Shown: positions 1 to 46,401 of the stretch, piece after piece
Numbering within the stretch: the stretch's first letter is position 1
How the letters are laid out: each line of letters starts with the position of its first letter
From: Rhodosorus marinus CCMP1338
Taxonomy: Eukaryota; Plantae; Rhodophyta
DNA length: 64,000 bases
Direction of reading: 5' to 3'
NCBI GenBank assembly: GCA_029953675.1
Contig: JAMWBK010000005.1
Span: 62,001-126,000, forward strand
Notes under the pieces: model-generated
Told to the model about the DNA's origin: nothing
Databases searched by the model: none
The model's input: only the letters and a program-made list of their open reading frames with translations
Position numbers and translations under genes: made by a program

Positions 1-99
1 CTGGGTTTATGTTTGGTTAGTGGCTTGCCACGCCCGTATACCACGCTTTGCTCAGATTTTGGACTTCTTTCTGTTGCGGAGCCACCTCTTTTACTCCCC
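1..99 (+). ncRNA. U2: U2 snRNA 3' half, diverged and cut by the window edge (probable pseudogene)
   Basis: Aligns by eye to the 3' half of the U2 copy at 63527-63730 (gtggcttgccac stem III tip; ends ttttactcccc). The loop IV TTGCACT is mutated to TTGGACT. Confidence 0.75.
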
Positions 100-2750: not shown

Positions 2751-2926
2751 TGCAAGTTTTATCATCTTTTTAGTTACCTTATTGAATGAACTTTGTTTTT
2801 GGTTTCGTGAGGGTGTATGGTGCTGGCTTTTGGTGGTTTTGAGTAGCAATTGTGTTCTTCGGTGGGAGGTGCTTCTTTCTGCAGCCTTTCCCCCGCATCT
2901 TCTAGTGGTGTGGTGCGTGCTGGGGG

Positions 2927-5818
2927 TTGCTAGCGCCCCTTGGAGGTCGTGGTGGTTTTTCTTTGGTTGCAAACGTTGGGAACAAGTTTTCTTTTTGGGG
3001 GTTTCGTGGGGGAATAGGTTTTTCACACCTTCCAATCGTTATGGTTGGGGTTTCCCCACCCATTCCGTCGGACGGAGCCGTTCTCTCAGCGCGCGTGGAG
3101 CTCAGCGTGGGCGGGTTTAGTACCGCGGCCACCCTCACGGACTGCGCTGACGAGTTGGCCCATGGGATCTGCTCGAAAATGACGAGTCTTCTTGTGACTG
3201 CTTCCCAGGAACACCGCCTGCCGCTGCTGATCGCCTATTTGGAGCGCTTCTCCGCCTCCGCGCCTGCCCCATACCCCCCGGTGCCCGTCCCCGCGGATCC
3301 GCACAGTACAACGGGGCCTGCCTCCAACCGACCCGAGCGCTCCGCTCCGGTCATTCCTGATTCCGACTGGCCTAAGGGCCGTTCCCCAGGGCCCTCGGGG
3401 CTGCGGGTGGAATATCTCCGTTTCTTAAGTGATGAAGGTTTGCAGGCGTTGGCGTGGGTGGTCGAAGCGCTTGTGAATGGTGATCCCCTGTGTGAGTGTG
3501 CGTGGTTCTTGGTCGGGCGTTCGCAGTTGTGTCTGTTTTCGAAGCCCGGTCACACGGCCTCGAGCCCTGCTATTCGCCCTATTGGCCTGGTTGAGGTGGT
3601 CCGCAAATTGGCGGCGCGATGGTTAGTGAAAATCCTGGTTCCCGACTCCCGCCGTTTCTTTGGGCACGTGCAGTTAGGCGTGGGCTATCGTGGTGGCTGT
3701 GAGTTGTTGTCTGTTTCACTCCGTTCGGAAATGGCGTACTCTCCAGATTCTGGGCTCCTCTCTGTAGATTTTACCAATGCGTTCAAGCGCGTCTCTCGTC
3801 CGGCTCTCATGCACGTGGGGCGCGAAGTTTTCCCTGTAGGCTTTCCCTTTGTTAATAGACTTTATTCTCCGCTTGGTCGTGGGGCTACCTTTGACACCCT
3901 TGGCGCTTCCTCACACACGTTTGCGTCGCGCACAGGGGTACAACAGGGTGATCCCTTGTCCCCTTTCCTACATGCCTGTGGACTACAACTCGTCTTGCTT
4001 TGTCTTCGCTCCGAATTCCCGCAGGTTCGTACGGTTGCATACCACGACGACGTGTGCCTCCTGGGGCCCCCCGATACTCTAGCGCTCGCTTATGATCGTC
4101 TCCGCTCCTTGGCTTCGCGGGTTGACTTGGAGGTTAATCATCACAAATCGTTCTACTGGGGAGGTGTAGCTGCACAAGAGCAGCAGGTACCTGCGTCGTT
4201 CCAGGATATTTGGAGACCGGATGGTTTTGTCCACTTAGGCATCCCCTACGGGTCGCCGTCCTTCGTTGAAGGCGAGTTCCTGCAGCTCCTCGGTAAGCAC
4301 AGACAGCTGGTTGCAGAGCTTCGCCGGCTACCTCCGGGCTTTCTCCAGTGCTCGTTGTTGCTGTTTCGGTATTGTTGCAGTCAGCGGTTAACCTATTGGC
4401 TCCGCTCACTTCCAACTCATTGGGGCCGGTGGTTGGCCACTCGTGCGGATGCTGAAAGTTTCCGTGCCCTTGGGTTTTTTCTCGATGAGGAGCTGAGCGC
4501 TCTGTCGCGACCCACCTGTGATGTTGTGCGCGCCCAGGTAGGCCTCCCATTGCGATTGGGGGGACTGGGCCTCTGCAACCGTGTTGTGGTCCAACCCGCA
4601 GTCGCAGTAGGGGCCTGGGGAACCGCACTTCCCACTTTGAGCAGTTTGGGTATCTCGAAGTTCCGCAATTTGATGGCGAGCCTCTCGCGGGGTGTCTTGC
4701 TTCCCAGCGTACCGGAAAGCGCCCAAGACTTATTTCTGGAGCTCCAAACCGCCCTGAATTCCTGTACTAGTCTCCCCGAAACCGTTCAACCCCGTCTTCC
4801 TGACTGGCGAGCTGTATTTGACCGCTCTCGAGGCTCCGCCCCGGGGATTCGTCCTGCGCCTGAACCTGTTCTAGGGGAGATTGACCCAGTGGTTGCCGCA
4901 GAAGAAGAAGTTCCAGTTGATCCTCCTGATGATTCCCAGCGCGCTGGGAGCCGAGCTCAAGCACGCACGGATGCGCTGCAAAATATCCTTTCTTGGGACT
5001 TGCACCGTGCTGCATATGGCAGACTCTTCGCGCAGATGGTCTCATCTTCTCGCGCTCGCGCCCGCCTACGTAGTCTTGGAGGGGTTATTAGCTCTCAGTG
5101 GCTCATGACCGTACCAGCCTTTCCGCCACTCACACTGTCGGATTTCGAAGTGCGTACTTCACTGCGCTTATACCTCGGCTTACATCAGCCCCCTTGGCCG
5201 TACGAGATGGGTTCGTCGTGCCCTCTCTGCTCTCAGACTGAAGACAACGCAGATTTTGGCGCCCACCTGCTCGCTAGTTGCCCGGCGGTGAAAGGTGCTC
5301 GAACCCGCCGCCATACACGGATCTTGAACCTGTTATACCGGGAACTTCGGCCTATAGTCCGGCAAGCCGGTCTGGAAATCGAACGTGAGAAACCTTTACC
5401 CGTCGCGGACTTTCAAAATGATGAACGCCGTGTAGCCGACCTGGTGATAACCTGTGACGACAGCCGCCGTACCACATACGTTGATCTTGCTGTTCCTAAC
5501 CCTCAAGCTAGTCGTTATCTTCCGGCTGCGGGGGAGCGCCGTGGATCTGCCGCCGCCAGCATGAGACGCCGCGAAGAGATCAAATACGCGGGGGCTTTGT
5601 CTTCCCCTGGTGTTCGTGCTTCGGCACTAGCACATCGCTTGGTACCCCTGATCATTGAGTGCTTTGGGTTCATGGACTCTGTTGGTTCTCGCTGGCTTCG
5701 GGAGTTGTTCCGCGAACGCCCTGACCGTCTTCAATCGTTGTTTACCCGCTTAAGTTTCCTGCTGTGGCGCATGAATGCCGCTTTGATGTTGGAGGCGCGA
5801 GTTCTTCGCCGCACTTAG
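2927..5818 (+). CDS. Family A RT-RLE polyprotein (true N-terminus probably at 1702, separated by the B insertion)
   Basis: RT motifs PGPSGLR, RPIGLVEVVRKL, QLGVG..GGCE, VDFTNAF, GVQQGDPLSP and YHDD; thumb LPLRLGGLG; CPLC..H...C knuckle, RRH, ADLVI and YVDLAV. Confidence 0.92.
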   Translation: MLAPLGGRGGFSLVANVGNKFSFWGFRGGIGFSHLPIVMVGVSPPIPSDGAVLSARVELSVGGFSTAATLTDCADELAHGICSKMTSLLVTASQEHRLPLLIAYLERFSASAPAPYPPVPVPADPHSTTGPASNRPERSAPVIPDSDWPKGRSPGPSGLRVEYLRFLSDEGLQALAWVVEALVNGDPLCECAWFLVGRSQLCLFSKPGHTASSPAIRPIGLVEVVRKLAARWLVKILVPDSRRFFGHVQLGVGYRGGCELLSVSLRSEMAYSPDSGLLSVDFTNAFKRVSRPALMHVGREVFPVGFPFVNRLYSPLGRGATFDTLGASSHTFASRTGVQQGDPLSPFLHACGLQLVLLCLRSEFPQVRTVAYHDDVCLLGPPDTLALAYDRLRSLASRVDLEVNHHKSFYWGGVAAQEQQVPASFQDIWRPDGFVHLGIPYGSPSFVEGEFLQLLGKHRQLVAELRRLPPGFLQCSLLLFRYCCSQRLTYWLRSLPTHWGRWLATRADAESFRALGFFLDEELSALSRPTCDVVRAQVGLPLRLGGLGLCNRVVVQPAVAVGAWGTALPTLSSLGISKFRNLMASLSRGVLLPSVPESAQDLFLELQTALNSCTSLPETVQPRLPDWRAVFDRSRGSAPGIRPAPEPVLGEIDPVVAAEEEVPVDPPDDSQRAGSRAQARTDALQNILSWDLHRAAYGRLFAQMVSSSRARARLRSLGGVISSQWLMTVPAFPPLTLSDFEVRTSLRLYLGLHQPPWPYEMGSSCPLCSQTEDNADFGAHLLASCPAVKGARTRRHTRILNLLYRELRPIVRQAGLEIEREKPLPVADFQNDERRVADLVITCDDSRRTTYVDLAVPNPQASRYLPAAGERRGSAAASMRRREEIKYAGALSSPGVRASALAHRLVPLIIECFGFMDSVGSRWLRELFRERPDRLQSLFTRLSFLLWRMNAALMLEARVLRRT

Positions 5819-6463
5819 TCTTTTTTACCCCTCGGGGTTGTTTTTTTTCAGCCTCCGATTAAACCATTCGTTCGATAGCAACCTTGATCAGATTTATACT
5901 CTCCTAGCCGGACGGGTTGGTCCAGTTTCGACTTGTCCAATCTTCAAGTCTACCTTTTAGCATCACGATCGCGGACAACTCGAGAGAATCTGAGCCCCTT
6001 TTAGAGAATCCGCCTAGGCTTGCCTACTGTAAATAGCCCATGAAAACCCCCTTATGGAGTCGAACTCGAGGTACTGCTCGCTGTTCTCTCCTTCATGAAC
6101 GTGAAGGCGGTACTCATATCGCCGCTCGTTCCCAGCACTTCAACTTAAGACGTTTTTTTGTGATGGTGTGCAGCCTTGGCCGCGTCTTGGACGAGACTAA
6201 AATCTCCTCCAAACCCCATTCCAAAAACACAAAACCGGGCGCTTACTCGGTACCCACCACAACCCAGACCGTAAGTTGGTTTCTAATCTCTCCGAGTAGC
6301 CCTGGCAACATATCGGTATATACGTTATCTAAGCAAAACTGATATTTGCAGAGGCTGTCATAGGCATATTCCTCCTCCAATTCATGATTAGATTGAAATC
6401 CTTAGCTCCTCTATTCAATCGTTCTACCAAGACAGGTTCGACCAACCCTCCCCCTCTCCCAAG

Positions 6464-6664
6464 TCCGAACGAATGGTTTAATCGGAGGCTGAAAAAAAAA
6501 CCCCGAGGGGAAAAAAAGACTAAGCGCGGCGAAGTACTCGCGAGTCCAGCGCATTGATGTACGTTCGCTTTGATGTTGGAGGCGCGAGTACTTCGCCGCG
6601 CTTAGTCTTTTTTTCCCCTCGGGGTTTTTTTTTCAGCCTCCGATTAAACCATTCGTTCGTTCGA
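6464..6664. repeat. Two family A 3' ends in inverted, divergent orientation
   Basis: About 6464-6543 (-) and 6566-6664 (+) are reverse complements of the A terminus, separated by about 20 nt. Confidence 0.9.
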
Positions 6665-7076
6665 TGAATATGTCTATCTGACGGGCTTACACCATCGGTG
6701 GTTATCCCCATGGCTCCCACTCATTTTTTAAAGTTTCTATTCGTCCATCCAGTAAAGCTTTTTCTTTAACTTCTTAGACGAAAAAGGGTTTTTTATTTCT
6801 CATACGATAATCTATCCCTGTAATATTGGAATACTTTCCTACCCTTTTCTATTTTACCAAAATATTGCGATATTGCTCATTGAGTTGGTACTACAATCTG
6901 TTTTGATTGCAAATAAAGTCAATGATGTGTTTCAAAAAGAGACGCTTTGAATTTATTTTGCAATCTTTTTGTGAGCAGCCTATGAAATTGTGAGATGAGA
7001 ACAATTTAATTGGTCTTCTGTTTACGTGGAATGTCCAGACACGTCCAACGCAGGCAGCGCGATCAAGATCGTCGTC

Positions 7077-7237
7077 GAATGAATGGTTTAATCGGAGGCT
7101 GAAAAAAAAACCCCGAGGGGAAAAAAAGACTAAGCGCGGCGAAGTACTCGCGCCTCCAACATCAAAGCGGCATTCATGCGCCACAGCAGGAAACTTAAGC
7201 GGGTAAACAACGATTGAAGACGGTCAGGGCGTTCGAT
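7077..7237 (-). mobile_element. Family A 3' fragment fused to U2
   Basis: Encodes ERPDRLQSLFTRLSFLLWRMNAALMLEA, followed by the A 3' UTR and a cattcattc tail. Confidence 0.92.
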
Positions 7238-7397
7238 GGGGAGTAAAAGAGGTGCTCCGCAACAGAAAGCAGTGCGAAATCTGAGCAAAGCGCGGTAAAC
7301 GGGCGTGGCAAGCCACTAACCAAACATAAACCCCTCCAGAAAAATATTTGTAACAAAAGCATCTAAAATTTAGATGCATCAAGTTGTTACACTTGAT
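7238..7397 (-). ncRNA. U2: U2 snRNA retrocopy, 5'-truncated (starts at stem IIa)
   Basis: atcaagTGTAACAActtgat (stem IIa), gcatctaaattttagatgc (IIb), TTGTTACA (IIc partner), Sm-like AATATTTTTCTGG, then stems III and IV. Confidence 0.88.
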
Positions 7398-7454
7398 CGT
7401 CGTCAGGGTCAACATCATTTATTCCAGCCGTGCGGATGTCAACCGATGATGTTG

Positions 7455-7620
7455 AATTGTTTAGTAGGAGACTGCAACAAAAAAAAACAGAGTGGAACAG
7501 AGACGAATTGCCACGAAGGTTGCGCGCCTCAAAGATCAAAACAGCGTTAATACGCCACAACAAGAACTCAATCGAGTAAACAAGGATTGAGACGGTCCGG
7601 GCGTTCGAGGAAGAATCAGC
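7455..7620 (-). mobile_element. Old, degenerate family A 3' end
   Basis: Diverged match to the ERPDRL...WRMNAAL coding segment and the T-rich 3' UTR. Confidence 0.6.
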
Positions 7621-8389
7621 GACGTGCCGCTTTGATCAATCATATTGACTGGGGACTTTCATGTTCTCCTTGCCTCGGTCTGTGGGTGCAGACAGAGTAC
7701 AGGTCCATCACCAAGTGTTCCAAGAGCAACGTCACGATAAGAGCTTTACCTACTCCGTTCAAGCCCTTTGGGTTCGGTTGATAGCTTGTTCTGTTCTTGT
7801 CGCTCTCGTATGTAGCACTGTACCATCATCCACTAGGCGTTCCGCAGCTGTGGACCACGCGGTCTAAGACATCGCCGCCATACGCTAGTCAGAAACTGAG
7901 ATGCACGTTGAGCTTTTGCGAGTTGAGGGTTCGTTTCTGTCGCTGGCATACGGGAGGTGCGAAGTAGTCGGCCTAAGGGGTTGCGCTGCAGACGATGAAG
8001 TGTTCCCACACCATGGCGACCCTTCCGTACATAATAGCGGTCATCTGCGAAGAAGAGACCAGGTCGTCTGTAACCAAGTACAAGACTAGGGAGTACAAGG
8101 CGAGTAAAGTCCAGACTAGGGAGAGCGGATATGAACAGGCATGACAGGTCCGCCATTTACGTGAAAGGCCTTGCATTGGCTCCTCAGGGCTCACTGGTGC
8201 GCCACTAGCATTGGAGGGTCAAGTTCCGAGGCTAATCGACCACGGTCTAACACGACAGGCGTCTTGGCGTGTTGTCCTCCTTCGCGGCTTGGACTTGGGC
8301 GGAGGCAGTGCTGGCCGTTGTCTCGGTGAGGGGTTCCGTTCTCTCCCGCTCCAGTGTGTGGGGTTGGGCATTTATCATCGTCGAGGGCG

Positions 8390-10724: not shown

Positions 10725-13700
10725 ATGAAGAGCTACAAAATCCTTCTGTTGGCGGCGGTATGTGGTACGTGGTTATATGCATGCGCAGCTGCGCACGGAG
10801 TAAGCGTGGTCAATGACGCATGTACTGGGTGGGGTTTACCCGACGAAATATGCGCCATGGCGATGGATGAAACGCAGGAGTTGGTCGAGGCGAAGCCTCA
10901 GAACAAGTTGACGATCTACGCGCCATACTTTTACGTTCTCGACTTCTCTCAGAACAATACTGAAACGACGACGTTGTTCGGGGGCAACACTTTTGTCGAG
11001 ATCTATGGGTTCTACGTTATGATCAAAGGGAAGGCAGGCGTTACAGCCAATATGAAAGGCACTACACTCTTCATTTTTGCCTCGATTATCGATATACAGA
11101 GTGATGGATCGTTTGCGCTGGATGTCAGTGGTCTTCCAGTAGACGTTGCTCCACCGACCGTGCCTCCTGCTCTTCCCCTGCCGGCTCCCGCGCCACGGTT
11201 TTCCGGGCAACCAGGGAAGACGGGTGTAGCCGGTGATGCAGGAGGGAGTGGAACAGACGGGAACCCTGGCGGGAAGTTCATAATGATCACCAAACATTTA
11301 AACCTCACGTCACTTCACTCTGAAGGGCATGATTTCACGATCATCAACGATGGGAGCGCAGGGTCGATTGGTGGAAAAGGTGGACCTGGACAGACCGGCG
11401 GCACAGGAGCTAGTGGAGTGTCCTGCAGCCTACATAGCACGAAATTCGGAACGAACAACGATCCCAACTGCTGTAAGTTCTGCCATGCATCGTTTGGCAA
11501 ATGGGAGCGATGCAACATTTACCAAGCTGGTCAGCCTGGGGCGGGAGGTCCGGGAGGTCCCGGGGGACCTGGTGGCAGAGGTGCAGGCCCCGGATGGGTA
11601 TCTGTGTATTCTAACTCAGCAAGCGGAGCGGAGAACAAGCCGATAGATAATGATACAGTCGAAGGTATGATCCTATCCACGGGCAAGCATGGGGAGGTGG
11701 GGTTGGGAGGGCCAGGTGGTGATGGTGGAGCTGGTGCACACAACGACCCCAACGCGCTATGTACGACGTATACGGAGGGCCTACCTTTCACGACGAAATA
11801 TCAAGGCAAGGCTTCCGTGAATGCCACGGGATTACCTGGCCCTCAAGGGCCCGCAGGAACCAATGGGACGACATTCGGATACGCAAGGCCGAAGTTCATT
11901 CGGGCGACGGTCAATTCGACGGGGAATCCGTACGATGGGAACCACTACGAGTATCCGCAGGACTGGGTTTACCAACAAAACGTCGAACCAGTGGAGTACC
12001 TGGGCTTCGGACTGGAGCTTTCTGAGAACATGCTTAACTCGTTGGCATTCGTTGACGACGACGTCGGTGCTCAGAACACGTACAACCTGATTCTCCAGTC
12101 GGTGAGCGATATGATGTACAACGCCCAGTTAATGGTGAACCGTACCTCCGACTCCACGACCAAGAAGCTCTACGCCTCCTACGTGAACAAAGCGTGGACT
12201 TTGATCAAGAGCATCAACCGGGTGAGCTCGCCGGGTGGGTCGCCTCTTGGACAAGTGTCGATCGCGAGCTTCGAGCAGCAGCTTGATGACCTGGTAGAGT
12301 TTCGAGATCTTGCCGAGGTGGTGGAAGGGTACTATGCCGAGTACGCCAAGGAGGTGAACAACACGGCGACATCGGAGAGGATCCTATTGAATGCCACCAA
12401 TAGTTCGTTGGTCGGAGTTCAACAGCAGACGACTCTACAGCAGCAGATCTACAAGAGCCTGGCGAAGATGAACGAGACGTTGGATGACGTCGCTCTGAAG
12501 ATCCAGATGACAAAATTCGCACTCAACACGGACCAGCAGGAGCTCAATGAGTGTTGGGAGGAGGCTCAAAAGGCCTTGCAGTTCCAAAAGGTCATGGATT
12601 TTGTCTCCTTTGTCGCGGCTGTCGCAGACTTTGGGCTTGGAGCCACCAAGCTCGTAGGTCAGGCGTCCCAAGTGATCAGTAAGGGCGCCACATTCTTTAA
12701 GGGTATCAACGCGGCGTCGGGGTTCAAGTACAACAGTATTCCTGGGCTTATGACCAAGATTCAACAGCTCGTTCCAGGACCCGGGCAGTCCTCAAACTGG
12801 GAACCGTACGCATCGAGTATGGAGCTAGTGGAGGGGGATCAGTCGAGTCTGGCCGGCTACGAGGGAGGGCTCTCCAGCGCTCTTGAAGGGATCTACCACG
12901 CGGACAACTACGAGGATGCTCAAGAAATCTTTAAGAAGATGAACGAGACGGCGGACGACTATAGATCCGCAAGAATAAGTATGGCGAAGACAGAGGTGAC
13001 CAACAAAGTCAACGCGATGAAGTCGGCATGCCCAGGACAAGCCCAAGAGTTTTTCCGAAGTTTTGATACGCTTCAGATGTGGGTCAACCAGCGCAACGAT
13101 CTACTCGCGGTCTACACCGCCCTCGTTTCTTATTTCAACCGCGTTACGGCGAAGAAACTCTACTTGGAGAATGTCGCACAGAACACTCTTGTTGAACTCC
13201 AACAGAACACCATCAATCCAGCTTCTCTCGCCGTACTTAACGTACACCAGGAGACCTACAACATGATGGTTGACCAGTTCTCGAAGAACTTGGGTCTCGT
13301 TCTCAACGCGAGGAGCTACCTGATGATGGGGGCGGGTAGCAGTCCCTCTTCCCTATCGTTTGCCAACTGTCGTTGGGAGACGTCTATTATGAAGGACTCG
13401 AACAACATGTTTTTCAAGTGTGCCGCGAATGCCGTGCTTCAGCTGAAGAACGCGCTTTCGCAGTGGCACACGTCTACCTACTCGAAGAACCAGCTGGTGG
13501 ACTGGATGTCGTACTGGGGTCCAGTTGAGCTCAACGAGGAGTCCATAGGTTCCGATCGATGGGCAGATTTCAAAAAAACGGGCGTTCTCAGCTTCTGCCT
13601 GGATCCCACCGAGCCGAGTTTCAACAAGGGCCCGGGCATGAGCGCCGGGATGTTCTTCCCGCTGATAAGCATGGACAGCATCTACGTTGTTATGGACGGT

Positions 13701-14516
13701 GCACCGGAAGAGGGTGTGCGAGTTGACATTCAACATATGGCATCGTCTGGAGTTGTTCGGGCGATGGAGAACCCGACGAGCGGTGACTCCGCGCATCCCT
13801 ACCTGACAAAGAAGTTTACACATGTTGACAGGGACCTTCGATTCATTTACGCTGGAGAGGCTCCAGCGGACGATAAGGTCAGCATGCTTACCTGGATGAA
13901 GTCGACGAACATCTCGGTGAAGGCGGACGTCGGAGACCCAAGTGAGACACTTAGAATAAGTCCGTTCAGCAACTACCAAATCGAGACCGACGTTGGCATT
14001 CTTGAGGACGTGAACAACGTACGGGTGTATTACACTGGACACTATGTGCCAGCAGCAGACTTTAATATCCCGCCGATCTCCTCTTTATCGGAAACCATCA
14101 TGTGCCCTTCCACTGTTGCGAAACCAGCAGCAACCCCGACGCCAACGACCTCTCCATCAGACACCAGCAAGACGACCGCGGCAGGAAAGGATTTGAAATC
14201 CTACTCGGCATCCGCAGAACTCGTGAGGAGATATGAATTGCCCGACGGATCATACACCAAAGCATGTCGAATCAGCTTTGAATACCCCGTTGGAGGGCAG
14301 CGCCCAGAGCATATCAAACTCGAATGGAAGTGGGAACAGTACCAGGAAGGCACCAACTGGGAGTACAGCAACGAAATTTCAATGGCAATCAATGGAGCAC
14401 AAGCCATCCTCACATTCAACAATACTCCAGAGGCAGTCAACGAACCCACTCCTGCTGTACTGCTAACTGATAGCTGTCCTACGAACCTTCGAGTGGTTAG
14501 CCAGTACCCTCTGTAG
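10725..14516 (+). CDS. Large secreted protein (1263 aa): signal peptide, Gly-X-Y/Gly-rich segments with Cys-rich loops, long helical region, C-terminal beta domain
   Basis: Uninterrupted ORF with a hydrophobic N-terminus; collinear paralog at 24445..28368. Confidence 0.9.
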   Translation: MKSYKILLLAAVCGTWLYACAAAHGVSVVNDACTGWGLPDEICAMAMDETQELVEAKPQNKLTIYAPYFYVLDFSQNNTETTTLFGGNTFVEIYGFYVMIKGKAGVTANMKGTTLFIFASIIDIQSDGSFALDVSGLPVDVAPPTVPPALPLPAPAPRFSGQPGKTGVAGDAGGSGTDGNPGGKFIMITKHLNLTSLHSEGHDFTIINDGSAGSIGGKGGPGQTGGTGASGVSCSLHSTKFGTNNDPNCCKFCHASFGKWERCNIYQAGQPGAGGPGGPGGPGGRGAGPGWVSVYSNSASGAENKPIDNDTVEGMILSTGKHGEVGLGGPGGDGGAGAHNDPNALCTTYTEGLPFTTKYQGKASVNATGLPGPQGPAGTNGTTFGYARPKFIRATVNSTGNPYDGNHYEYPQDWVYQQNVEPVEYLGFGLELSENMLNSLAFVDDDVGAQNTYNLILQSVSDMMYNAQLMVNRTSDSTTKKLYASYVNKAWTLIKSINRVSSPGGSPLGQVSIASFEQQLDDLVEFRDLAEVVEGYYAEYAKEVNNTATSERILLNATNSSLVGVQQQTTLQQQIYKSLAKMNETLDDVALKIQMTKFALNTDQQELNECWEEAQKALQFQKVMDFVSFVAAVADFGLGATKLVGQASQVISKGATFFKGINAASGFKYNSIPGLMTKIQQLVPGPGQSSNWEPYASSMELVEGDQSSLAGYEGGLSSALEGIYHADNYEDAQEIFKKMNETADDYRSARISMAKTEVTNKVNAMKSACPGQAQEFFRSFDTLQMWVNQRNDLLAVYTALVSYFNRVTAKKLYLENVAQNTLVELQQNTINPASLAVLNVHQETYNMMVDQFSKNLGLVLNARSYLMMGAGSSPSSLSFANCRWETSIMKDSNNMFFKCAANAVLQLKNALSQWHTSTYSKNQLVDWMSYWGPVELNEESIGSDRWADFKKTGVLSFCLDPTEPSFNKGPGMSAGMFFPLISMDSIYVVMDGAPEEGVRVDIQHMASSGVVRAMENPTSGDSAHPYLTKKFTHVDRDLRFIYAGEAPADDKVSMLTWMKSTNISVKADVGDPSETLRISPFSNYQIETDVGILEDVNNVRVYYTGHYVPAADFNIPPISSLSETIMCPSTVAKPAATPTPTTSPSDTSKTTAAGKDLKSYSASAELVRRYELPDGSYTKACRISFEYPVGGQRPEHIKLEWKWEQYQEGTNWEYSNEISMAINGAQAILTFNNTPEAVNEPTPAVLLTDSCPTNLRVVSQYPL

Positions 14517-19035: not shown

Positions 19036-19762
19036 GGGTCATCACTGCCCAACATCAACTGGACTGTGGCAACGTAGGCACGACGAAATCTGCAGAGAGC
19101 TGGCACGGTGGCTGACGAACGAATGGTTTAATCGGAGGCTGAAAAAAAAAACCCCGAGGGGGTTAAGGCGATGGAACTTCATGGACGTAGAGCAAGAACC
19201 TGAGGGGTACTTCGAGAACTACGGACTGCGACCTGATGTCGTTGCTAGGCATCCGAGGACCAAACAAAGGTATGCGCTGGATGTGACGGTGGTGTCACCA
19301 TTACAGGGAAAATATTTGCGTCGGAGCCCAGATGATAGCGGATACGCGGCGAGAGCTGCGGAGAAGTGGAAAATCGCTCACTACAAAGAAGCGATGGTGA
19401 TGGAGAAACCGGATGATAAGTTCATCCCGATAGCAATAGAGACGTTTGGGCGTACGGGGCAAATGGCACAGGAGTTCCTCCGGGACAGCTGCAAGCACTT
19501 ACTGCACAGGAGTGAGGAGCTGAGAGACGTGAGATCGCAGATAAACCGGCAACTATGGCGAGGTAACGCAGAGATAGCATTAGGCGCTTTGCGCGTGGAC
19601 CAGTTGGAGAATCCGCTGGTGCCTGTTTTTTTCTTTTGAACGTAGCATGAGACCCCGGTAGCGGGGTTCCAGTAAGTTTCTCCCTAGATAGGATTAGACA
19701 TAGTGTTGCGCTGCAGTAGGCAGCTGCCCACTAAAGCTTACGGTTACGTTAGTCTGGGGTTA
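19036..19762 (+). mobile_element. Family B 3' fragment containing a ~45-nt family A micro-insertion (about 19114-19162)
   Basis: RLE ORF 19019..19639, B 3' UTR and gttacgttagtctgggg tail. Confidence 0.9.
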
Positions 19763-22700
19763 CGCATCAACTGCTCAAAAGAACTTCAATCAGTGACAGG
19801 ACGTCTGAATGAGCTCGCCAAAAAACCGCATATGTGGCAAGACGGACGAGCCACTACGACCCCGCCTCAACCCCCGCAGCAGCACCCGCGGACGGCCGCG
19901 GTCAATCAACATGCGGCAGAACCCATCATCAATCAACTTGCGGAGGGGACAGGTGTCCTTGCCTCACTGGACTATGCCACGGCCTTCCCTGTTGCCGGTA
20001 CCAGCAGCACACGGCCAACGTACGCTCAGAGGACTGTCCAAAGTACTCCAGCTCGAGAATCAGAGGCTCAACTCCGACCAGCCGGGCGCCCGGGCCCACA
20101 GAGCCAGCAGGCAGCGCTGCGACAGTTGCACGCCACTGTGGGAGGGGTCCTCCTGGGGACCTGAGACCAAGCCGGTACTGGCGACCCTGAGGAATGTAAG
20201 ACCGCCACGGTTGGACGAGGTAGCCCCATCGGATTTCACTACGGTTCTTTGCAGAGCCTTGGGGATTCCGAGCTCTTATGTAGCGCACGTGGACTTCATC
20301 GCTTCCCACGCGTGCTTACTCTCACATCCGGACGCGATTCCGATTCTACAAAGCGCCATCTCTCGGGGCGTTTTCAGGACGGGCATCTTCGGTTCGTTCA
20401 CCCAGAGACACCCCGATCGGCAAGTGACTCTCTACACGGGCCAGGCACTGGACACAGACAACCTGTTGGGCTATAATGAACGTCAGCTCATTGCCCCAGC
20501 GAATATCGGGGCTCAGACCCTGAAACGGGGGATTGAACAGACTATCCGGATCCGCGCGCGGCTTCGCAAAAGGCAACTCTCGTTCAACACACTCGCAGCG
20601 ATACACGAGTACCTGGAGAGCAGGCTCGGAACCCTACAAGCCACACAACGTACTCAAACGGTACCCGGGGAGAGCGCGGAACCCCCAGCGCCTGCCGCCG
20701 CCACGAGCGCAGACCCTGAAGCCTCGTCCCTCACAGGAGACGCACAGGCAGCCCGTGGGACAGTCGACGCTCCGGGTAATCCCTTAGAGACTTCCCAAGT
20801 ACCTGAAGAACCAGCTGCCGAGGATAACCCTCACGCAGAGCTCCTCTGCAACCTCCCCGAGCCTCCTCAACACAAGCGGTCGCGAGTAACCACTGATGGC
20901 ACAGGCCAGGATACCGAGATGATTCTCGCAGCCCCAGAAGCACCTCAGCGAGATACACATGCCCAGACCCACTCCGCAGCCCACGATAATGCGATGGACA
21001 TCCAGACCAGTCAGGAAGACACAACCCAATAATGCCGAGCCGACATAGGGGAATCAAACGCAGACGGGAAGAACCTCTTTTCTTCTCCAAGCGACAGGAC
21101 TGGATTGAACGCTGGAATGTTTTCGTTAACGATATCACGGACAGAGGAAGGTTGTGGACTCGCCTCGCACACTGCCCCGTCCCTACTCGACGCTTCGTAC
21201 CTCGCGCACACGTCAACGACTGGAGCAGACTCCTTCGGGTCGCCCTGGAGCTGACAATGGACCGCAGCGCACCAGTGAATGCTAGCCTCTTCCTCTCCGG
21301 GCTCCCAGGATTGGTTCTCGGGTACACTGCTCTTCCAATCGGCACGCAGTTCACGCACGTACTCGAAGGCGAGTTTCACACGGTCTGGACTGCGCTCGAG
21401 GAATATGCCTCCAACCAGACCCTTCGTACTGCCCTAGGCGGACCTGAAATAGACCAGAAACAGGCGCAAAGGCGGCGAAAACAGGCCCTGAAATTGGCAC
21501 ATCTCGGACGCCTCTCACACGCGGCCCGCAGAGTGCAGGCCACCGAACTCGCTCCATTTACCAACGCTACGTGGCAACAACTGGAGGAACTCTTTCCGGA
21601 CCAGACGGAGTGCTCCCTACCGGTGGATGTCGATCCAGCCCTACAAAACCTGCTCTCCAAGGACACCGATAATCTCCGGAGAAGATGGAATGCCCGACTA
21701 GCAGCAGACGAAGGTATCCTCGCGATAATAGCCCGGCTTCCCCAAGGTACTAGCCCCGGGCCTAGCGGACTCCGAGCAGAACACCTGCAGGGAGCCACCC
21801 AGAACGTCCAAGTGGCTCTAGTCCGCGTTCTCCGGCAACTTGCTACGGCACCAGAGAAGTTTCCACCCCAGATGACCCTGGCAATGCGTAGCAGCAGACT
21901 ACTGCCGTTTGAAAAACCCACGAGCAACACAACCGTTGCAGCGAGACCTGGCATCCGGCCGATCGGAGTCCCCGAAGTCCTCCGAAAGGTGGCCACACAG
22001 TGGATCCTTCGTTCGGTCACCGACCGCGTTAAGAAACTGCTCATACCTCTACAACTGGGCATCGGAGTTAGCGGTGGTTGTGAACGATCACTACACGCGA
22101 TCCAGGCACAGCTCTCGTGCGAACCTGACGCCGTCGTCTTACGGCTCGACCTGGAGAACGCGTTCAACCGCATTGACCGCCGCATCGCAAAGCAAATCCT
22201 GGACCACCATTTCCCCGAGCTGAAAGCCGTGTACCGGCAGCTACAGGAAACGACAGCACGGAAGCTCCTACACTCTTCGGATGGCGTGATAACCACGATG
22301 CAGACCAAGACGACACCCACCGCTTGACACTTCGGGCCAGAACGGGAGTTCAACAGGGAGATCCCCTAGGACCGATCCTACATGCGCTCTCCCTGGCGCC
22401 TTTCTTGGAAGCATTGCACAACAAAGCACCTAATTTAACCATTGTGGCAATCCATGACGATATCACCATCGTAGGGCAGCTACCACTACTGAAAGACGTA
22501 CTACACTGGGGACAGGCACTACTACCCTCACTCGGAGCCCGACTGCAGCTTGCCAAGTGCACATTGTACGGCACCTCGATGACCACGCCACGACTGGTCA
22601 GCCGCGAGATCCCTGGCGTCACGACGACGCGAGACGGAGTTACAATCCATTCCATTCCGATTGGAACTCGCGCTTACATCCAAAGCGAGTGCCGGCGGCT

Positions 22701-23610
22701 ACAAAACAACCACGAGAAACTATTTAAGGAGATAGTGCACCTGCCCCCTGAAGAACTGACTACGAAACTGGCCCTCTTCCGTTATTGTTCTGAACCCCGC
22801 CTGGACTACTTTCTACGCTGCCTCGCCTACCCCTTTGGAAGAACACTTGCACGGGAAGCGGACGCCCTGACGCGTTATCACCTAGATACACTATTTGGAG
22901 GCCTCACTACTACGACCATCGAGGACCCTGACTACGAAAAATCTACGCTAGACCAGATAGCACTCCCCTGTCGCTAGGGAGGACTGGGCTTTGCTACGAG
23001 ACAGCGGATCCAGCCCATCGCCTTCTACTCGGCCTGGTGCGAGACCTTCAAAGGTAATAACGGGCAATGGCCATATGTCACCAGGGTCGAAGAACAATCC
23101 TCTTCGAAAGTGCATGCAGCAACACACGCACTGAGGAGAATCCAAAGGTCAACAGCACAGCTTCCCGACCAGATTTGCGAGTCTGCAGCAGCAACACAAC
23201 GCAGACTGCGACCCGAGGCCCCAGAGCGAATCAAGAATTTGGCCACCCTGAAGCCGAGAACCTAACCCGCCCCGGAGCGAATCAAGAATTTGGCCACCCT
23301 GAAGCCGAGAACCGAACTCGCCCCAGGAGCAGAAGAAGCCGATCCCCCAGCTTGGAAACATGGTTCCATTCAACAAACCCTCTCCAGAGAGGCACACCAT
23401 GCAGCTTTCCAAAGACTGGTTTCGCACGGGCAAATTTCGGCTGAAGATCGGGCCAGAATTCGGTCCGCAGCCGGAGCTGGCTCAGGAGTGTGGTTACGGG
23501 AAATGCCGACGCTCGCGCCGAAAAAAATGAGTACCGCCGAACTGCAAGTGAATGTAAGACAGCTGTTGGGCTTGCCGATACCGGGAATACGGACGTCGGG
23601 GAAATCTACT
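19763..23610 (+). mobile_element. Family B (subfamily B1): ORF1 plus disrupted ORF2 RT, 3' end missing
   Basis: ORF1 19809..21032 and ORF2 from 21032, with RPIGVPEVLRKV, LDLENAFN, GVQQGDPLGP and IHDD; frameshifts and a stop later. Confidence 0.9.
19809..21032 (+). CDS. Family B1 ORF1 protein (5'-truncated)
   Basis: Homologous to the B2 ORF1 pieces at 60767-62505; TAATG overlap with ORF2. Confidence 0.7.
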   Translation: MSSPKNRICGKTDEPLRPRLNPRSSTRGRPRSINMRQNPSSINLRRGQVSLPHWTMPRPSLLPVPAAHGQRTLRGLSKVLQLENQRLNSDQPGARAHRASRQRCDSCTPLWEGSSWGPETKPVLATLRNVRPPRLDEVAPSDFTTVLCRALGIPSSYVAHVDFIASHACLLSHPDAIPILQSAISRGVFRTGIFGSFTQRHPDRQVTLYTGQALDTDNLLGYNERQLIAPANIGAQTLKRGIEQTIRIRARLRKRQLSFNTLAAIHEYLESRLGTLQATQRTQTVPGESAEPPAPAAATSADPEASSLTGDAQAARGTVDAPGNPLETSQVPEEPAAEDNPHAELLCNLPEPPQHKRSRVTTDGTGQDTEMILAAPEAPQRDTHAQTHSAAHDNAMDIQTSQEDTTQ

Positions 23611-24109
23611 AGTTGTGGTAGTTCGGCTGGCGGGGATTCGGTGGATCCGCTCGCTATCAAGCCGAGCCCCCCCGAGGCCTCGGGTGTTCGGCGTCGCGTT
23701 GCCGGCTCTTTGGCGGCTGCTTATGCGTCCCTCTCCTCTCTGCGTCTCCCTCCGCCCAAGCGTCCTCTTTTGAGGCCAGGGGCGGGGGACAATTCTTCTC
23801 CTTCCCACCCTGATTCTCATCCCAATGACGCTTCCTCCGAAGTGAGGGAGCAGGATATCCGAGTCCCTGCGGGATCCTTGCGAGCTCCCTGCTTTTTTCA
23901 CTCTTCCGGGTAGTTTTTGAGGACTGGCGTTCTAGCGCGTTTCCCTTCCCCAGGCTAACCTAAGGCATCGAGACGGTGACCCGGCGACGAAGGCAGAGTG
24001 GCTAACCACAGGTGCCAGAGATGGCCTCACATGCCGCGGTGGCGAGCGGCGGTGGCAGGCGGTGTGAAGTGAGAGTTGAGCAAGATTGCGTGAGCGGCAC
24101 TGTGTCACT

Positions 24110-24444: not shown

Positions 24445-27400
24445 CTAGCAAGATACTACCTTGATACTTGCTGGGCAGCTCTCGGAGACGACGGTAACTT
24501 TGGCCTCCCTCATATTTTCACTGAGGACGGCGGCTGAGAGGTTGAAGATTACAGATTTCTTGTTGGAGCTCACTGCAACGCCTTCCGGTCTCTTCCACTG
24601 CGTCCTCTTCGGCTTATCGGACCAATCCCAATCCATCTTCATCATCTTTGGCAGATAAACTCCATCGTTTGCTCCGATGGTGATCTCGCACGCGCTGACT
24701 TGACCTACTGAGGATTCTGACACAACTCTTTTTACAGAAGAGCTGTACGAAGCGCAAGCAGTCGATCCTATTTCACTCAACATGGTTTCAGCGGGCACGA
24801 AAGCAGATTTTTCCCTGAATTCCTCGAACAGGGCGGAAGCGCTCGTTCCCTCTTCGTCCGGAGCTGAGGTTGGCGTCGCTTCGACTGACGGCATCGGCGA
24901 GGGAGTCGAGGTTGGCGTCGCTTCGTATACCGGAGTCGGCGAGGGAGTGCTCGTTTCTTCCGGCGAGAACGAGTTGCACATGATCGGTATTTTATCGTCA
25001 AGAGGGTCGGCAAAGTTTGACCTCACATAGCTTCCGGTGAAATAGAGCCGAATATTTGCGATACCTTCGATGTCTATCAACCTCGTATCCAGCCGGTAGT
25101 TGCTGAACGGGCTGATATCGAGGTAATTTTCTTCAGAAAATATGGCGTGCTGTCGAATGAAGTTCGACGCCATCCAATCAGCCAAACTCTGCTCCTCATC
25201 ATCCGGGGCGCTGCCGTAGTACATAAAAGTACGTCGCCTGTTGGTGTGCGAGAACTTCCTCACGTTATACATCGATTCTTCGTCGTCTCCCTCAGCGACC
25301 CGCACAATACCGGAGCTGGCCATGTGGGTGATATCCAAAACGGGCTCGGCGCTATCGCTGACGCCGTCGAACACGGCATATATACTGTCCAAAGAGATCA
25401 GCGGGAAGAAGAGGGGAGATACCAGCCCAGGTAGGCTATTGAACGCCTTATTTGATGGATCTATGCAGAAGTTCATCGATCCTGTTTTCACGAATTCCGC
25501 CCAGTTTTCTTCTCCGATCGTCTCGGCGTTAAGCTCCACGGGGCCCCAGTAGGCGCCGTATTCCATCAACTGGTGGAGCTCGTAGGTGTTCTCATACCAA
25601 TTTTTCAACGACTGCCGAAGCTTAAGAATCGACTCTGAGGCGCACTGAAAGTACAAGCTCTTGGAGATGTCCAGTAAGGACGCCTCCCACTCGCAGTCGG
25701 CGAGGGTGATCGTGTTCAGCCCGGTAGTGGAAAGTCCCATCATTAGGTACTCCCTCGAGGTAAAAACCAACTCGAGATCCCTGTGGAAGTCGTCTACGAG
25801 TGAGTTGTAGTTGCTTTCGTGGGCGATCTTGACCGCCGGGGCAGCGGGATTGATCATGTTGTTCTTGATCTCTATGTTCAGAGCGTCAACGACGTTCATA
25901 AGGTAGAGCTTCCTCGCCGTAACCTGCTTTAGGTAAGCCATGTAGCTCGTGTAAAGCGCGATCAGATCATTCTTCTGCTCAACCCACATGTCTGCCGTAT
26001 CGAAAGCCCTGAGAAAACCGCTTGCCGACGAGTAGCAGTCTTTCTTCATGAAGCTGACGTAGTCCATTAGCTCCTTCCTATCCATTGCCACCATCGCCGA
26101 GCTCATGTTGTCCTGCATCGAGTTCAACTGCGCAGCGATTGCCATAGCCGCTTCGTAGTCATCGGCCTCGTAGAGACTGTCGAGTGGATCTGCTAGGGTA
26201 TCGGAAGCTAGATTTCCAATGTCTTCCATGATTGCGTCCACGCTTGGAGTGTACGCGGACCAGTCCGCTGAATCTCCCGCGGAAGGAAAGAAGCTGTGGA
26301 TCTCCTTAGTAAGGTCGGTTATCGCCTTAAACTTAAACCCGCTGAAGCCGTCGATACCCTTGAACGCGGTTTTTGCCGCATCGGACTTCGAATTGCTCGA
26401 CCAGCCCCCAGCCTTTGACAGCACTCGTGTCACCGAGAATCCCAGGTCGAAGACGCTCATAGCGAAGCTCGTAAACTCCATTACCGTCTCGAACACCATC
26501 TGAGCTTTCACCTTCTCCCAGCACTCGTCCATAGCGACCTGCTGCTGGTCCATCTCCCAGTAGTATTGCCTAATGTTCTCCTCTGCGGTGAGGATAGAGC
26601 GATTTACCTCCTGCATCTGCACCAGGAGCTCCTCCTGCTTCGACCGCTGAGCCAAGATGCCGTTCTGTGCGTTGCTAGTCGCGTTGGTGAGCATCTCCAT
26701 TGAGGCCGCAGCGTCATCGATTGAGTCTCTGAAAATGTCGTAGTAGATCTCCAGCTCGGCTCCGAGTTCACGTCTGTCCTCAAGGTAGTCCAGAAGATAC
26801 TCGAAGCTCATCACGCTGACCTCGTTCACGGGCCTCGTCGTCGAGGTTGTGAGCTGGTTCGCAGCCTGGATGATCGAGATAGCCTGGCCAGCGAGGGAGG
26901 TATACTTTTCCCTGACGGTGTCATCGGCAGTCTGGTTGGCAGCACGCTGCGCATTATAGAGCATATCCGACGTTGAGGCCATGATCATCGCGTAGGCGTT
27001 TTGGTTTTGGTCGATGTTGTCATTGAAGAACATGACCCTCAACATTTTCTTCGAAAGGCTGAGACCGAAGTCAATGTAGGCAGGTGGCTGTATGTAGTCT
27101 ACGTACGCATACTCCTGGGGTTGCTCAAAGTCGTTGTCATCCCAATCCTCCACTTCAGCGCCAACCACCCCCCGGAATGACTTCTCAAGTGGCAAATGGG
27201 AGATCGACCCTCCGCCTCCCCAGCCACCGGACCACCCTTGGTCGCCTTGCGGAGGATATCGGAAATCAAATGACTCATAGTAGTTGACGTTCAGGATGAT
27301 GTTCTTGGTCCATGTTCGAACCCCGCATCTGTTGGTAAGCGTGCCCCCGCTTCCCCCGTCACCTCCACGCCCACCGGTCCCCCCCGAGCCTGAGATCGAT

Positions 27401-28368
27401 TGGCCAATAAAGAGCGCGCTGGCATCTTCACTAGTTAACTCAACGTTCTCGCCACCCACAACAACATTTGAGTAGATCTTCACCTCTCCAGCCTTTCCAC
27501 CGTCTCCTCCGGTACCACCCGTGCCTCCGGGCCCTCCCTGCTGCGGCGCGCCGGGGTTGTAGTACTGACAAATCTTTTTATCGCCATTCCATGCTGCATC
27601 AGTCGGACACTGATTACACCACCAGGCTGAGCACCGGCTTGCTACCCAGTCGTCCTTAAGCCCACAGGGCATACCGTCCACGCCCTGCTGAGCGTTGCCA
27701 CCCTGTCCACCTATTCCTCCCGTTCCACCTTCACCTCCATTTGTCGTCACAGTCATTTTGAAGCCGCCCGAGTACAAGCTCGCAACATCCAGGCTCTTGG
27801 CGATAAGTGTGAAGTTCCCACCGCTCCTGCCCTGGTGCCCTTTGTAACCCGTGAAGCCCCATTTGCCCATGTCGCCATTCGGACTATCGGTGTGTGATTG
27901 TTGCTTCGGAGGACCTGGCACATCCGGCTGTTCCGGAGCCTCAGGAGGAAGGGAGGTGAGTTCATTTGCTGTGAGGTTCACTTCGAAGTCTCCATCCGTC
28001 TTTATCTCCACGACGCTCCCGATGATCGAGAGGTTCGTCCCCTGCATCTTCGCAACCGCCCCCGCGGCTCCTTTGATAAGAATGTAGTATCCGTATACAA
28101 CGACATCTTGATCCGACCCGAAAAGCTTCGTCGAAGACGTCTCGTCCTCCGAAAAATCGATGACGTAGAAAAACGGTGCGTACACGTTGAAAACACCTCC
28201 TTCCTCACCATCGGCGTAGCCAGATGCCACATCTTGTGCCATCAAGCATGCCGTACTCGACAATCCCCAGCCTTCACAAACTTCGGAGTCCTCTGCATTT
28301 ACTGGGCAACTGAAAAGCAGCCCAAAAAGGATGCACAGTCCCCATAACACGACTGTTTTAATGTTCAT
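24445..28368 (-). CDS. Large secreted protein (1307 aa), paralog of 10725..14516
   Basis: Uninterrupted ORF with signal peptide. Shared motifs YAPFFYVIDFS, YWGPVELN.E.IG, FFPLISLDSIY and ISPFSNY. Confidence 0.9.
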   Translation of the reverse strand: MNIKTVVLWGLCILFGLLFSCPVNAEDSEVCEGWGLSSTACLMAQDVASGYADGEEGGVFNVYAPFFYVIDFSEDETSSTKLFGSDQDVVVYGYYILIKGAAGAVAKMQGTNLSIIGSVVEIKTDGDFEVNLTANELTSLPPEAPEQPDVPGPPKQQSHTDSPNGDMGKWGFTGYKGHQGRSGGNFTLIAKSLDVASLYSGGFKMTVTTNGGEGGTGGIGGQGGNAQQGVDGMPCGLKDDWVASRCSAWWCNQCPTDAAWNGDKKICQYYNPGAPQQGGPGGTGGTGGDGGKAGEVKIYSNVVVGGENVELTSEDASALFIGQSISGSGGTGGRGGDGGSGGTLTNRCGVRTWTKNIILNVNYYESFDFRYPPQGDQGWSGGWGGGGSISHLPLEKSFRGVVGAEVEDWDDNDFEQPQEYAYVDYIQPPAYIDFGLSLSKKMLRVMFFNDNIDQNQNAYAMIMASTSDMLYNAQRAANQTADDTVREKYTSLAGQAISIIQAANQLTTSTTRPVNEVSVMSFEYLLDYLEDRRELGAELEIYYDIFRDSIDDAAASMEMLTNATSNAQNGILAQRSKQEELLVQMQEVNRSILTAEENIRQYYWEMDQQQVAMDECWEKVKAQMVFETVMEFTSFAMSVFDLGFSVTRVLSKAGGWSSNSKSDAAKTAFKGIDGFSGFKFKAITDLTKEIHSFFPSAGDSADWSAYTPSVDAIMEDIGNLASDTLADPLDSLYEADDYEAAMAIAAQLNSMQDNMSSAMVAMDRKELMDYVSFMKKDCYSSASGFLRAFDTADMWVEQKNDLIALYTSYMAYLKQVTARKLYLMNVVDALNIEIKNNMINPAAPAVKIAHESNYNSLVDDFHRDLELVFTSREYLMMGLSTTGLNTITLADCEWEASLLDISKSLYFQCASESILKLRQSLKNWYENTYELHQLMEYGAYWGPVELNAETIGEENWAEFVKTGSMNFCIDPSNKAFNSLPGLVSPLFFPLISLDSIYAVFDGVSDSAEPVLDITHMASSGIVRVAEGDDEESMYNVRKFSHTNRRRTFMYYGSAPDDEEQSLADWMASNFIRQHAIFSEENYLDISPFSNYRLDTRLIDIEGIANIRLYFTGSYVRSNFADPLDDKIPIMCNSFSPEETSTPSPTPVYEATPTSTPSPMPSVEATPTSAPDEEGTSASALFEEFREKSAFVPAETMLSEIGSTACASYSSSVKRVVSESSVGQVSACEITIGANDGVYLPKMMKMDWDWSDKPKRTQWKRPEGVAVSSNKKSVIFNLSAAVLSENMREAKVTVVSESCPASIKVVSC

Positions 28369-32319: not shown

Positions 32320-32324
32320 TTCAA

Positions 32325-39440: not shown

Positions 39441-39871
39441 AACCCACACGATCACCCAGCGATGCATATCGTCCCAATTCTAACGAAGGAACTCAAAAAT
39501 ACCCTTCTCCACGCTCCACCTCCTACAATAGTCCTCCTCTCTCATACACCGTCCTCAGTCCCCAGTCCTTCCGACTCGGAGCACATATGTAGACAACAAA
39601 ATCTCCCCCCCACGCTCTCTTCGAATAGCACACCACTTTCTCTCTCTCAAATCTCTAGTGGATAGCCACCACCCCCTCTCTTACTCAAAGCCGGGGGCGG
39701 CTCTCCCTAGATATTGTTTCTTACCCAAGTTATAAACTCTGAAAACGAATCACATTTGCTCAGGGATCAACCACCTTTCTCTTCACAAACCCCCCTGCAA
39801 AGTGTAACACGCACCAACCTCGCCCCAAGTGTATGCGCTCAACCAACCGTAACCTTTACTGGGCAGCTGCT

Positions 39872-40990: not shown

Positions 40991-41333
40991 GGAAAGGCGG
41001 TCAGGGAGGGCGTGTTTTCCGTCGGCAACCCGGGATTCACTCAGTTGACCTGTCCATGCGCTGGACTGGGTTCCTGTAGTGCAGTCCACTTGAAGCTGCG
41101 TGAAGCTAACCGCTCGAAGATTTACTAGCTCGGCAATCGAGGATCGTTGAGACGTCATGTACGGACAGCTGTCCAGATTAGCATGCTCCAGACTTTTGGT
41201 GTGGTAACGCTCAGTGGGCAGAAGACAAGACGGAACCCAATTCTTCAGTACAGAACATTTTCAGTTAGTCTCCAACCAAGCTGAGCTATCTCCGCAATTT
41301 CTAGCAAATTCTCAAATGTTCTACAGCTTGCTT

Positions 41334-45770: not shown

Positions 45771-46401
45771 ATAACTTCAAAAATGATTGAGATTTTCTCG
45801 TTGAGGTTGATGAGGAGTTTTTAATCAGACATGAGTAAGGAGGAGCCCAAAACACCCTGAGACAGGGGAGGTCACTAACGGCGGAACCGCAAAGCGCGCG
45901 CCTCCAAAGTCAGCCCCGCGTTGTAGACCAAAGCACAAAACTAAGCTGCATCAATTGTTCTGGCACACCTTCCGATTCTTTCTCGAAACGATCAGAAAGC
46001 CAGTCCACACCTTCCAGCTCCACAAAACCTAGACGTTCGCTGACAAGAGTGCCAAACGGATGGGTCAGCGCTGTGGTCTGCACTGATACATTTGTAGGAA
46101 CTTCGCTGTAAATAATATGTTTACGTCAACCCGTAATGGCAAATGTCGCGAAATCGCAAATGTCGCGAAATCGCAAATGTATCGAAATCGCGCGAAATCG
46201 CGACAGTTCCATTAAATGGTTGGTTTCTCTTGTCAAAATTAGTCACTTTTAAAAATATTTTCAGATTTTCTCGTTAAGGAGAAAAGACGAGGGACTTGGT
46301 AGAAAAGCAGCATAGTATTGGGATGGGACTGTTGATTGCTGTTTGCAAACGCTGGAGGGGACTTCGGGGTTTGCGATGTTTGGGGTTGCGATTGTTACGA
46401 G

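Follow-up and report, generated by a model that had tools for sequence, protein, structure and literature searches.

A U2 snRNA copy joined to the 3' end of an RLE-type non-LTR retrotransposon within a single target-site duplication in Rhodosorus marinus, and its probable origin by template switching

We analysed a 64,000-nucleotide stretch of the genome of the red alga Rhodosorus marinus CCMP1338 (contig JAMWBK010000005.1, positions 62,001 to 126,000), hereafter the window, to which all coordinates refer. Read along the minus strand from 7404 to 7067, a composite insertion consists of the direct repeat GACGACGATC, nucleotides 45-204 of a U2 snRNA, the dinucleotide AT, the 3' end of a family A retrotransposon with its tail, and a second copy of GACGACGATC. 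The U2 and family A parts share the same (minus) orientation, with U2 as the 5' partner. A previous description of this locus, made from the letters of the DNA alone (the sequence-only reading), had reported the U2 copy, the AT, the family A tail and a bracketing 10-mer, and all of them are confirmed here. Outside the chimera, the target context contains a diverged A-like 3' end (7449-7640, minus strand), located on the upstream side at about 45 nt from the insertion site.

The Rfam U2 model (RF00004) matches positions 7247-7422 of the minus strand with 52.3 bits, the gathering score being 46. BLAST and alignment place the true U2 homology at 7238-7397(-). Since this segment aligns with nucleotides 45-204 of a complete U2 copy located elsewhere in the window (63527-63686, 97.5% identity), the U2 part of the chimera begins at stem IIa; it is a 5'-truncated retrocopy extending to the RNA 3' end, ...UUUUACUCCCC. 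Its terminal sequence is ...CACCTCTTTTACTCCCC, and the captured end lies 9 nt past the end of the Rfam model alignment. The next two nucleotides, AT (7237-7236, minus strand), belong neither to U2 nor to family A when aligned with the other copies of both, and the junction reads ...ACTCCCC-AT-CGAACGCCC. This junction was found once in the window.

The family A part (about 7077-7235, minus strand, as delimited by alignment) corresponds to the last ~160 nt of the element, comprising the final ~100 nt of the ORF, then the 3' UTR and one ATTC unit of the tail. Over about 7076-7235(-) it is 98.75% identical to the copy at 55079-55238 and 96.3% identical to the 3' end (5713-5874) of the copy that encodes a reverse transcriptase (RT). 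It ends with CCATTC+ATTC, and other A copies end with CCATTC followed by one to three GTTC or ATTC units. The boundary of A-like homology at the chimera junction (A position ~2805-2808) was considered as the edge of a module and rejected, as it corresponds to the limit of similarity between diverged subfamilies.

The RT-encoding copy, at 2906-5874(+), is the longest A copy in the window and contains a 970-codon ORF2 (counted from stop to stop), a 3' UTR and a GTTC tail, as defined by Pfam, translation and PDB comparisons. Its ORF2 matches the Pfam RVT_1 profile (3e-10) and, among proteins in the PDB, the R2 and L1 ORF2 RTs. Near the C-terminus, a CPLC...H...C motif precedes HLLASCPAVKGARTRRH, a stretch that can be aligned with residues 949-983 of a solved R2 protein, and the R2 signature HxLxxCPAVxGARxRRH also finds its match in the family A ORF2. 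The combination of an RT, a CCHC motif and an R2-like restriction-like endonuclease (RLE) motif within one ORF assigns family A to the RLE-type non-LTR retrotransposons, with the domain order RT, CCHC and predicted R2-type RLE. The sequence-only reading had called the element CRE-like; this label is tentative, what is established being the domain composition, RT plus CCHC plus R2-type RLE, and the dispersed copies do not show the insertion into spliced-leader genes that characterises the CRE clade (CRE1, CRE2, SLACS and CZAR). We presume that an element of the type seen at 2906-5874 supplied the RT as well as the A RNA involved in the chimera. The closest database proteins found by protein search share at best 35% identity with the A ORF2. 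U2 is absent from the three loci (33 kb in all) surrounding the best A homologues in other organisms, a comparison that is little informative, and exact scans of metagenome contigs for the U2 3' end and the A tail gave no match.

At least 12 3'-anchored A copies are present in the window, with lengths of 34-1105 nt and mostly of just 34-280 nt. Their 3' end reads ...CAGCCTCCGATTAAACCATTC followed by the one to three GTTC or ATTC units, and the last ~165 nt form a module that is conserved across diverged subfamilies. The flanks of these copies are diverse, with no common target, and family A is therefore a dispersed element rather than a site-specific one. The A part of the chimera is typical of these 5'-truncated tails. 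The 3' flanks of two A copies show a weak likeness (CTTGATC), which is absent from the other copies.

The surroundings of these copies are dominated by retrotransposon debris. Dense nests of at least four or five different RLE-type non-LTR families fill the window, which has almost no recognisable host genes; the families include family A (2906-5874), family B (57317-59398), family C (35417-38092), an element at 19688-23910, and a family with a repeated GGACTTTACTAGCATAGCC end (30226-32376, 52420 and 56194). Two A 3' ends lie head-to-head with their tails outward, 17 nt apart, at 6466-6548(-) and 6566-6659(+), in a palindrome reminiscent of twin priming; a sub-threshold snoR125 match on both strands of 6466-6659 is probably spurious. 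Two family B 3' ends are arranged in tandem (45470-45606 and 45632-45768), and two B tails meet head-to-head around 59398, within 59380-59420 (GTTACGTTAGTCTGGGGT / TAACCCCAGACTAACGTAAC). A tandem array with a period of ~182 nt at 40400-41010 is composed of part of a diverged A-like 3' module and a G-rich spacer; it holds TACTCCCCGTGAAC, whose resemblance to the U2-A junction is probably a coincidence. A 132-nt satellite of ~19 units at 47205-49711 is open throughout and forms a long ORF of 1126 codons composed of 44-residue repeats (46336-49716). The ORFs at 10725-14516(+) and 24445-28368(-) encode proteins of 1263 and 1307 aa with 34% mutual identity and no Pfam domain, which may correspond to a repeated gene or to a mobile-element protein. 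Finally, a 643-aa ORF at 42599-44530(+) strongly matches the Pfam profile of RTX calcium-binding nonapeptide repeats (HemolysinCabind, 1e-29), an unexpected presence amid retrotransposon debris in a window that otherwise looks eukaryotic.

On the plus strand, the 10-mer bracketing the chimera reads GATCGTCGTC and occurs exactly twice in the 64 kb, at 7067-7076 and 7395-7404, where 0.16 occurrences are expected. Using random pairs of boundaries with equal spacing, drawn from the same repeat-rich window, a shared k-mer of at least 10 nt hugging both boundaries was obtained in 2.1e-4 of the trials. U2 nucleotides 45-47 could equally supply the final ATC of the upstream copy (7395-7404), and the tail possibly supplies the first G of the downstream one (7067-7076); owing to these overlaps, the unambiguous target-site duplication (TSD) measures 6-10 bp. 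A duplication of 6-10 bp together with 3 nt of microhomology (ATC) at the 5' junction is the normal picture for a 5'-truncated LINE insertion. The length of the repeat is also in character for family A, given that two short A copies elsewhere have clear 8-bp TSDs: a nested insertion at 39845-40153(-), bounded by ATTAAGCA, which lies in a B-like 3' end and has 12 extra nt at its 5' junction, and another nested insertion at 40900-40933(-), bounded by TAAATGTT. At the chimera, one TSD encloses the whole U2+A unit.

These properties bear on the possibility that the locus results from an assembly artefact (a collapse or false join among dense repeats), or from a rearrangement at the DNA level in which a U2 pseudogene and an A tail were brought together by non-homologous recombination, the 10-bp repeat being present by accident. 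Such an explanation is very improbable. The window is almost wall-to-wall nested repeats and as such prone to misassembly, but the junctions coincide exactly with the RNA 3' end and the tail of the element, a direct repeat of this kind seldom arises by chance (the 2.1e-4 given above), the sequences flanking the chimera are unique within the window on both sides, and a second locus displays the same type of junction.

The window contains three U2 3' ends, at 86-99(+), 7238-7251(-) and 63527-63540(-), and a single U2 5' end. All three copies stop at the identical base, ...CACCTCTTTTACTCCCC (...ACTCCCC), and continue into three unrelated sequences, with the flanks of a U2 gene absent from each. 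A common terminal base followed by divergent flanks, none of them from the gene, indicates that these U2 copies derive from the RNA and not from the gene. The complete copy, nucleotides 1-204 without gene flanks, occupies 63527-63730(-), as shown by alignments and by an Rfam match of 140.7 bits at 63536-63732. Within 0-2 nt past its 3' end begins a 5'-truncated family B element of ~856 nt (62671-63526, minus strand), which includes the C-terminal part of the ORF, the 3' UTR and the tail. The B protein homology starts at ...P|AAGSGSGVWLREIPTL, where AAGSGSGVWLREIPTL... corresponds to AAGAGSGVWLREMPTL... in another copy, after which the match extends into the C-terminus of the B ORF with 95% identity. 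This region is a second, independent fusion of U2 to an element, with another family and another junction position: the distance of the junction from the 3' end of the element is ~160 nt in the U2-A chimera and ~856 nt in the U2-B one.

The U2-B fusion is itself part of a longer composite. Directly before U2 nucleotide 1 lies the 143-nt 3' end of a diverged B subfamily (63731-63873, minus strand), whose tail ...GTTACGTTAGTCTGGGG forms the junction ...GTTACGTTAGTCTGGGG|ATCTTCTCGG with the start of U2. On the other side, the B copy is followed by two or three short B 3'-end or tail fragments in tandem (62556-62670, minus strand), which include a 55-nt piece with 98% identity to 63732-63786. The resulting B''-U2-B-tail-tail chain (62556-63873) looks like a single cDNA made from several templates, suggesting serial jumps. 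No TSD was found around the B''-U2-B composite, and a series of nested insertions is therefore possible for its outer links.

The third U2 copy, of which the 3' ~100 nt are present (1-99, plus strand), is cut by the edge of the window and ends with ...CTTTTACTCCCC. It is followed by 7 nt (AAGTCCT) and then by an unclassified repeat of ~150 nt at 107-253, a second copy of which, at 17420-17253 on the minus strand, starts at the same base. An ATG-initiated ORF at 254-1282, which has no Pfam match, follows this repeat directly in its first copy, and the arrangement may represent the 5' end of an element. The repeat and the ORF were also compared with family A as a possible 5' end of that element, but they are unlike the N-termini or ORF1 of its homologues, and the window holds no second long A copy. 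A permissive Rfam scan combined with ARAGORN found no small RNA other than U2 fused to elements in the window.

That three types of element adjoin the same U2 base could also point to two successive events, in which A, like B and G elsewhere, would have inserted precisely at the 3' end of an already existing U2 retropseudogene, a site that its endonuclease would favour. Many RLE elements are sequence-specific, and lineages specific for U2 are known (PMC4640811). At the chimera, in contrast, the TSD brackets U2 and A together rather than A alone, and the sequence that precedes the A junction is not repeated past the tail. Furthermore, none of the ~20 other 3'-anchored A and B copies lies beside U2, and their flanks are unrelated. 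The geometry of the known U2-specific elements is opposite as well: Utopia, an RLE element of the NeSL clade, and Keno, of the Tx1 clade, insert at U2 nucleotides 38/39, so that U2 continues from nucleotide 39 onward after the 3' end of the element (PMC4640811). We thus regard site-specific insertion into a U2 pseudogene as quite improbable. Insertion into a U2 gene in the manner of Utopia or Keno was rejected: the U2 part of the chimera begins at nucleotides 45-48 and is preceded by the non-element TSD sequence, the nearest element 3' end lying ~45-55 nt upstream, and U2 does not flank most of the elements, as unrelated sequence surrounds at least 12 copies of A and about 10 of B.

The sequence-only reading had proposed that the two parts were inserted together, in one target-primed event during which the RT copied the 3' end of its own RNA and then switched to the 3' end of U2. 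The same orientation of the two parts, the RNA terminus of U2, the own tail of the element, the 2 extra nucleotides and the single TSD all support this proposal, and we consider a single target-primed event carried out by the family A machinery, with a template switch from the A RNA onto the 3' end of U2 RNA, to be the most probable origin of the locus, with odds of about three in four. In such an event, the target would be nicked, priming would take place on an A transcript at its (RTTC)n tail, and ~160 nt of this transcript would be copied. The RT would then depart from the A template, adding about 2 untemplated bases, and resume on a U2 snRNA from its free 3' end (...UUUUACUCCCC), continuing back to about nucleotide 45. 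The cDNA end would finally be joined to the break in the second strand, 10 bp away, by means of the 3-nt ATC microhomology. The outcome would be TSD-U2(45-204)-AT-A(3' 160 nt + tail)-TSD, a chimeric retrocopy that is dead on arrival, and the empty allele expected from a single event would read ...GCGATCAAGATCGTCGTCAGGGTCAAC... with one 10-mer. The AT at the junction presumably reflects either an untemplated addition at the template jump or a post-transcriptional tailing of U2, and the U2 species that acted as acceptor may have been the mature RNA, a 3'-extended precursor or a tailed form.

The recurrence of U2 fusions supports the template switch, as the terminal base is identical in the other U2 copies, of which one is joined to family B. 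Several observations count against it. The A RNA was left at an internal position and not at its 5' end, while the jumping of R2-type enzymes in vitro is mainly end-to-end; the captured U2 end lies past the Rfam model, so that the acceptor may have been mature U2 or a precursor; the single occurrence of the junction applies to this window, and a SINE-like master may exist elsewhere in the genome; and the 10-bp repeat is reduced to 6 unambiguous bases when those it shares with U2 and the tail are set aside.

The TSD and the 5' truncation would be accounted for equally well if the U2-AT-A junction had pre-existed in an RNA, either as the transcript of an older chimeric locus serving as a SINEU-like master or as a read-through from a U2 gene into an A fragment, the locus then being a 5'-truncated retrocopy of this RNA, mobilised by the family A machinery through recognition of the A tail. 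SINEU families, in which a head derived from U2 is combined with a tail that depends on a LINE, do exist (PMC4494074), and the conserved ~165-nt 3' module of family A is the part that a non-autonomous element needs. This origin is nevertheless unlikely. The junction occurs once in the window, against at least 12 plain A tails; the other U2 fusions have different partners and positions, which fits repeated de novo switching; and, the U2 promoter being external, a retrocopy would not be self-transcribing.

Beyond the single-event template switch, U2 might be a preferred partner of these RLE-type elements and not a chance acceptor. Their RNPs would often capture a specific 3'-extended U2, possibly a precursor or a tailed form, would build multi-link concatemers and would sometimes place U2 upstream of a complete repeat unit (1-253). 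We regard this extension as doubtful. If it were true, mobile elements with a U2 head could originate in this way, and the elements might be functionally tied to U2 biogenesis, akin to the affinity of Utopia for U2; and if the preference holds genome-wide, it would provide a natural system in which to study the reasons for the capture of a particular small RNA.

Chimeric retrogenes, and probably SINEs, arise by template switching during target-primed reverse transcription (TPRT). To our knowledge, this switching has been documented in vivo almost solely for APE-type LINEs (L1, Tx1 and MGL). Template jumping in vitro is a textbook property of R2-type (RLE) RTs, and these enzymes are currently being developed into gene-insertion tools; genomic scars that record their behaviour in cells are therefore useful. 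The present case is mechanistically expected and relevant to R2-based insertion tools: the scars show jumps onto an abundant snRNA, few added bases at the junctions and chains of several templates, and they come with a warning that cellular RNAs can be co-inserted.

The RT of the Bombyx R2 element serves as the biochemical model of this enzyme class, being likewise the RT of a single-ORF RLE-type non-LTR element. Bibillo and Eickbush reportedly observed end-to-end template jumping by this enzyme in vitro. Robust serial end-to-end jumping, with the addition of 2-3 untemplated nt, was described in vitro for R2 RT (Upton et al. 2021, PMC8594491), and this behaviour predicts junctions carrying a few additional bases, as seen here, and concatenated 3' ends. 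The R2 observations concern an in vitro system and a site-specific rDNA element, whereas those reported here are genomic footprints of dispersed elements, with one jump made from an internal position.

Among the chimeras formed in vivo, the closest in structure are the mammalian U6/L1 chimeras and the rarer ones that join U1, U2, U3 or U5 to L1 or Alu (PMC4476161; Doucet 2015); PMC4494074 cites Buzdin 2002 and Garcia-Perez 2007 for mammalian snRNA chimeras, to which Buzdin 2003 can be added. Both precedents on which the sequence-only reading had relied, U6/L1 chimeras (PMC4476161) and template jumping by the R2 RT (PMC8594491), are borne out by the literature. As in the U6/L1 type, a sense copy of an snRNA is followed by the 5'-truncated 3' part of a LINE and its tail within one TSD, a structure ascribed to a template switch during TPRT, and the junction is variable on the LINE side and constant at the snRNA 3' end. 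The enzyme differs, as the LINE here is RLE-type (R2/CRE/NeSL-like) and has no poly(A), whereas L1 is APE-type. The partner differs too, being a 5'-truncated U2, a pol II transcript of the Sm class, instead of U6. The apparent frequency is far higher here, at about 2 of about 20 A and B insertions, counted in one window and thus in a very small and unusual sample.

The sequence-only reading had also asked whether a U2 chimera made by such an element would be new. U2 chimeras in general are already published, as U2/L1 and U2/Alu fusions and as the U2-headed SINEU (PMC4476161, PMC4494074), but our full-text search, which covered open-access papers, found no snRNA chimera made in vivo by an RLE-type element. 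The kind of chimeric retrocopy is thus known, and the locus adds a new twist to it, an RLE-type enzyme with an apparent preference for U2, by virtue of the different enzyme class, of U2 being the sole small RNA captured in the window, and of the apparently high rate in this small sample.

In the SINEU families of crocodilians (Kojima 2015, PMC4494074), U1 or U2 sequence likewise stands 5' of a tail that depends on a LINE, and the proposed origin is a template switch onto U2. These families are amplified, mobilised by the APE-type Tx1 and provided with a poly(A), whereas the structure described here is a single 5'-truncated copy in the window, with no amplification seen there. The bipartite and tripartite retrogenes of the Magnaporthe MGL LINE (PMC2104539) are a further non-mammalian case, in which a cellular ncRNA is joined to the 3' parts of LINEs or SINEs and double jumps have been inferred. 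The B''-U2-B-tail-tail chain at 62556-63873 resembles these chimeras and has more links; the LINE belongs to another clade, and the partner RNA is WEIRD/Mg-SINE in Magnaporthe and U2 in the present window.

As for the physical association of RLE-type LINEs with U2 sequence, it is shared with Utopia, and the arrangement sets the two apart. In Utopia and Keno, U2 is the target and follows the element 3' end. Here, a 5'-truncated element comes after the U2 RNA 3' end, U2 is enclosed by the TSD, and most of the A and B copies are located far from any U2 sequence.
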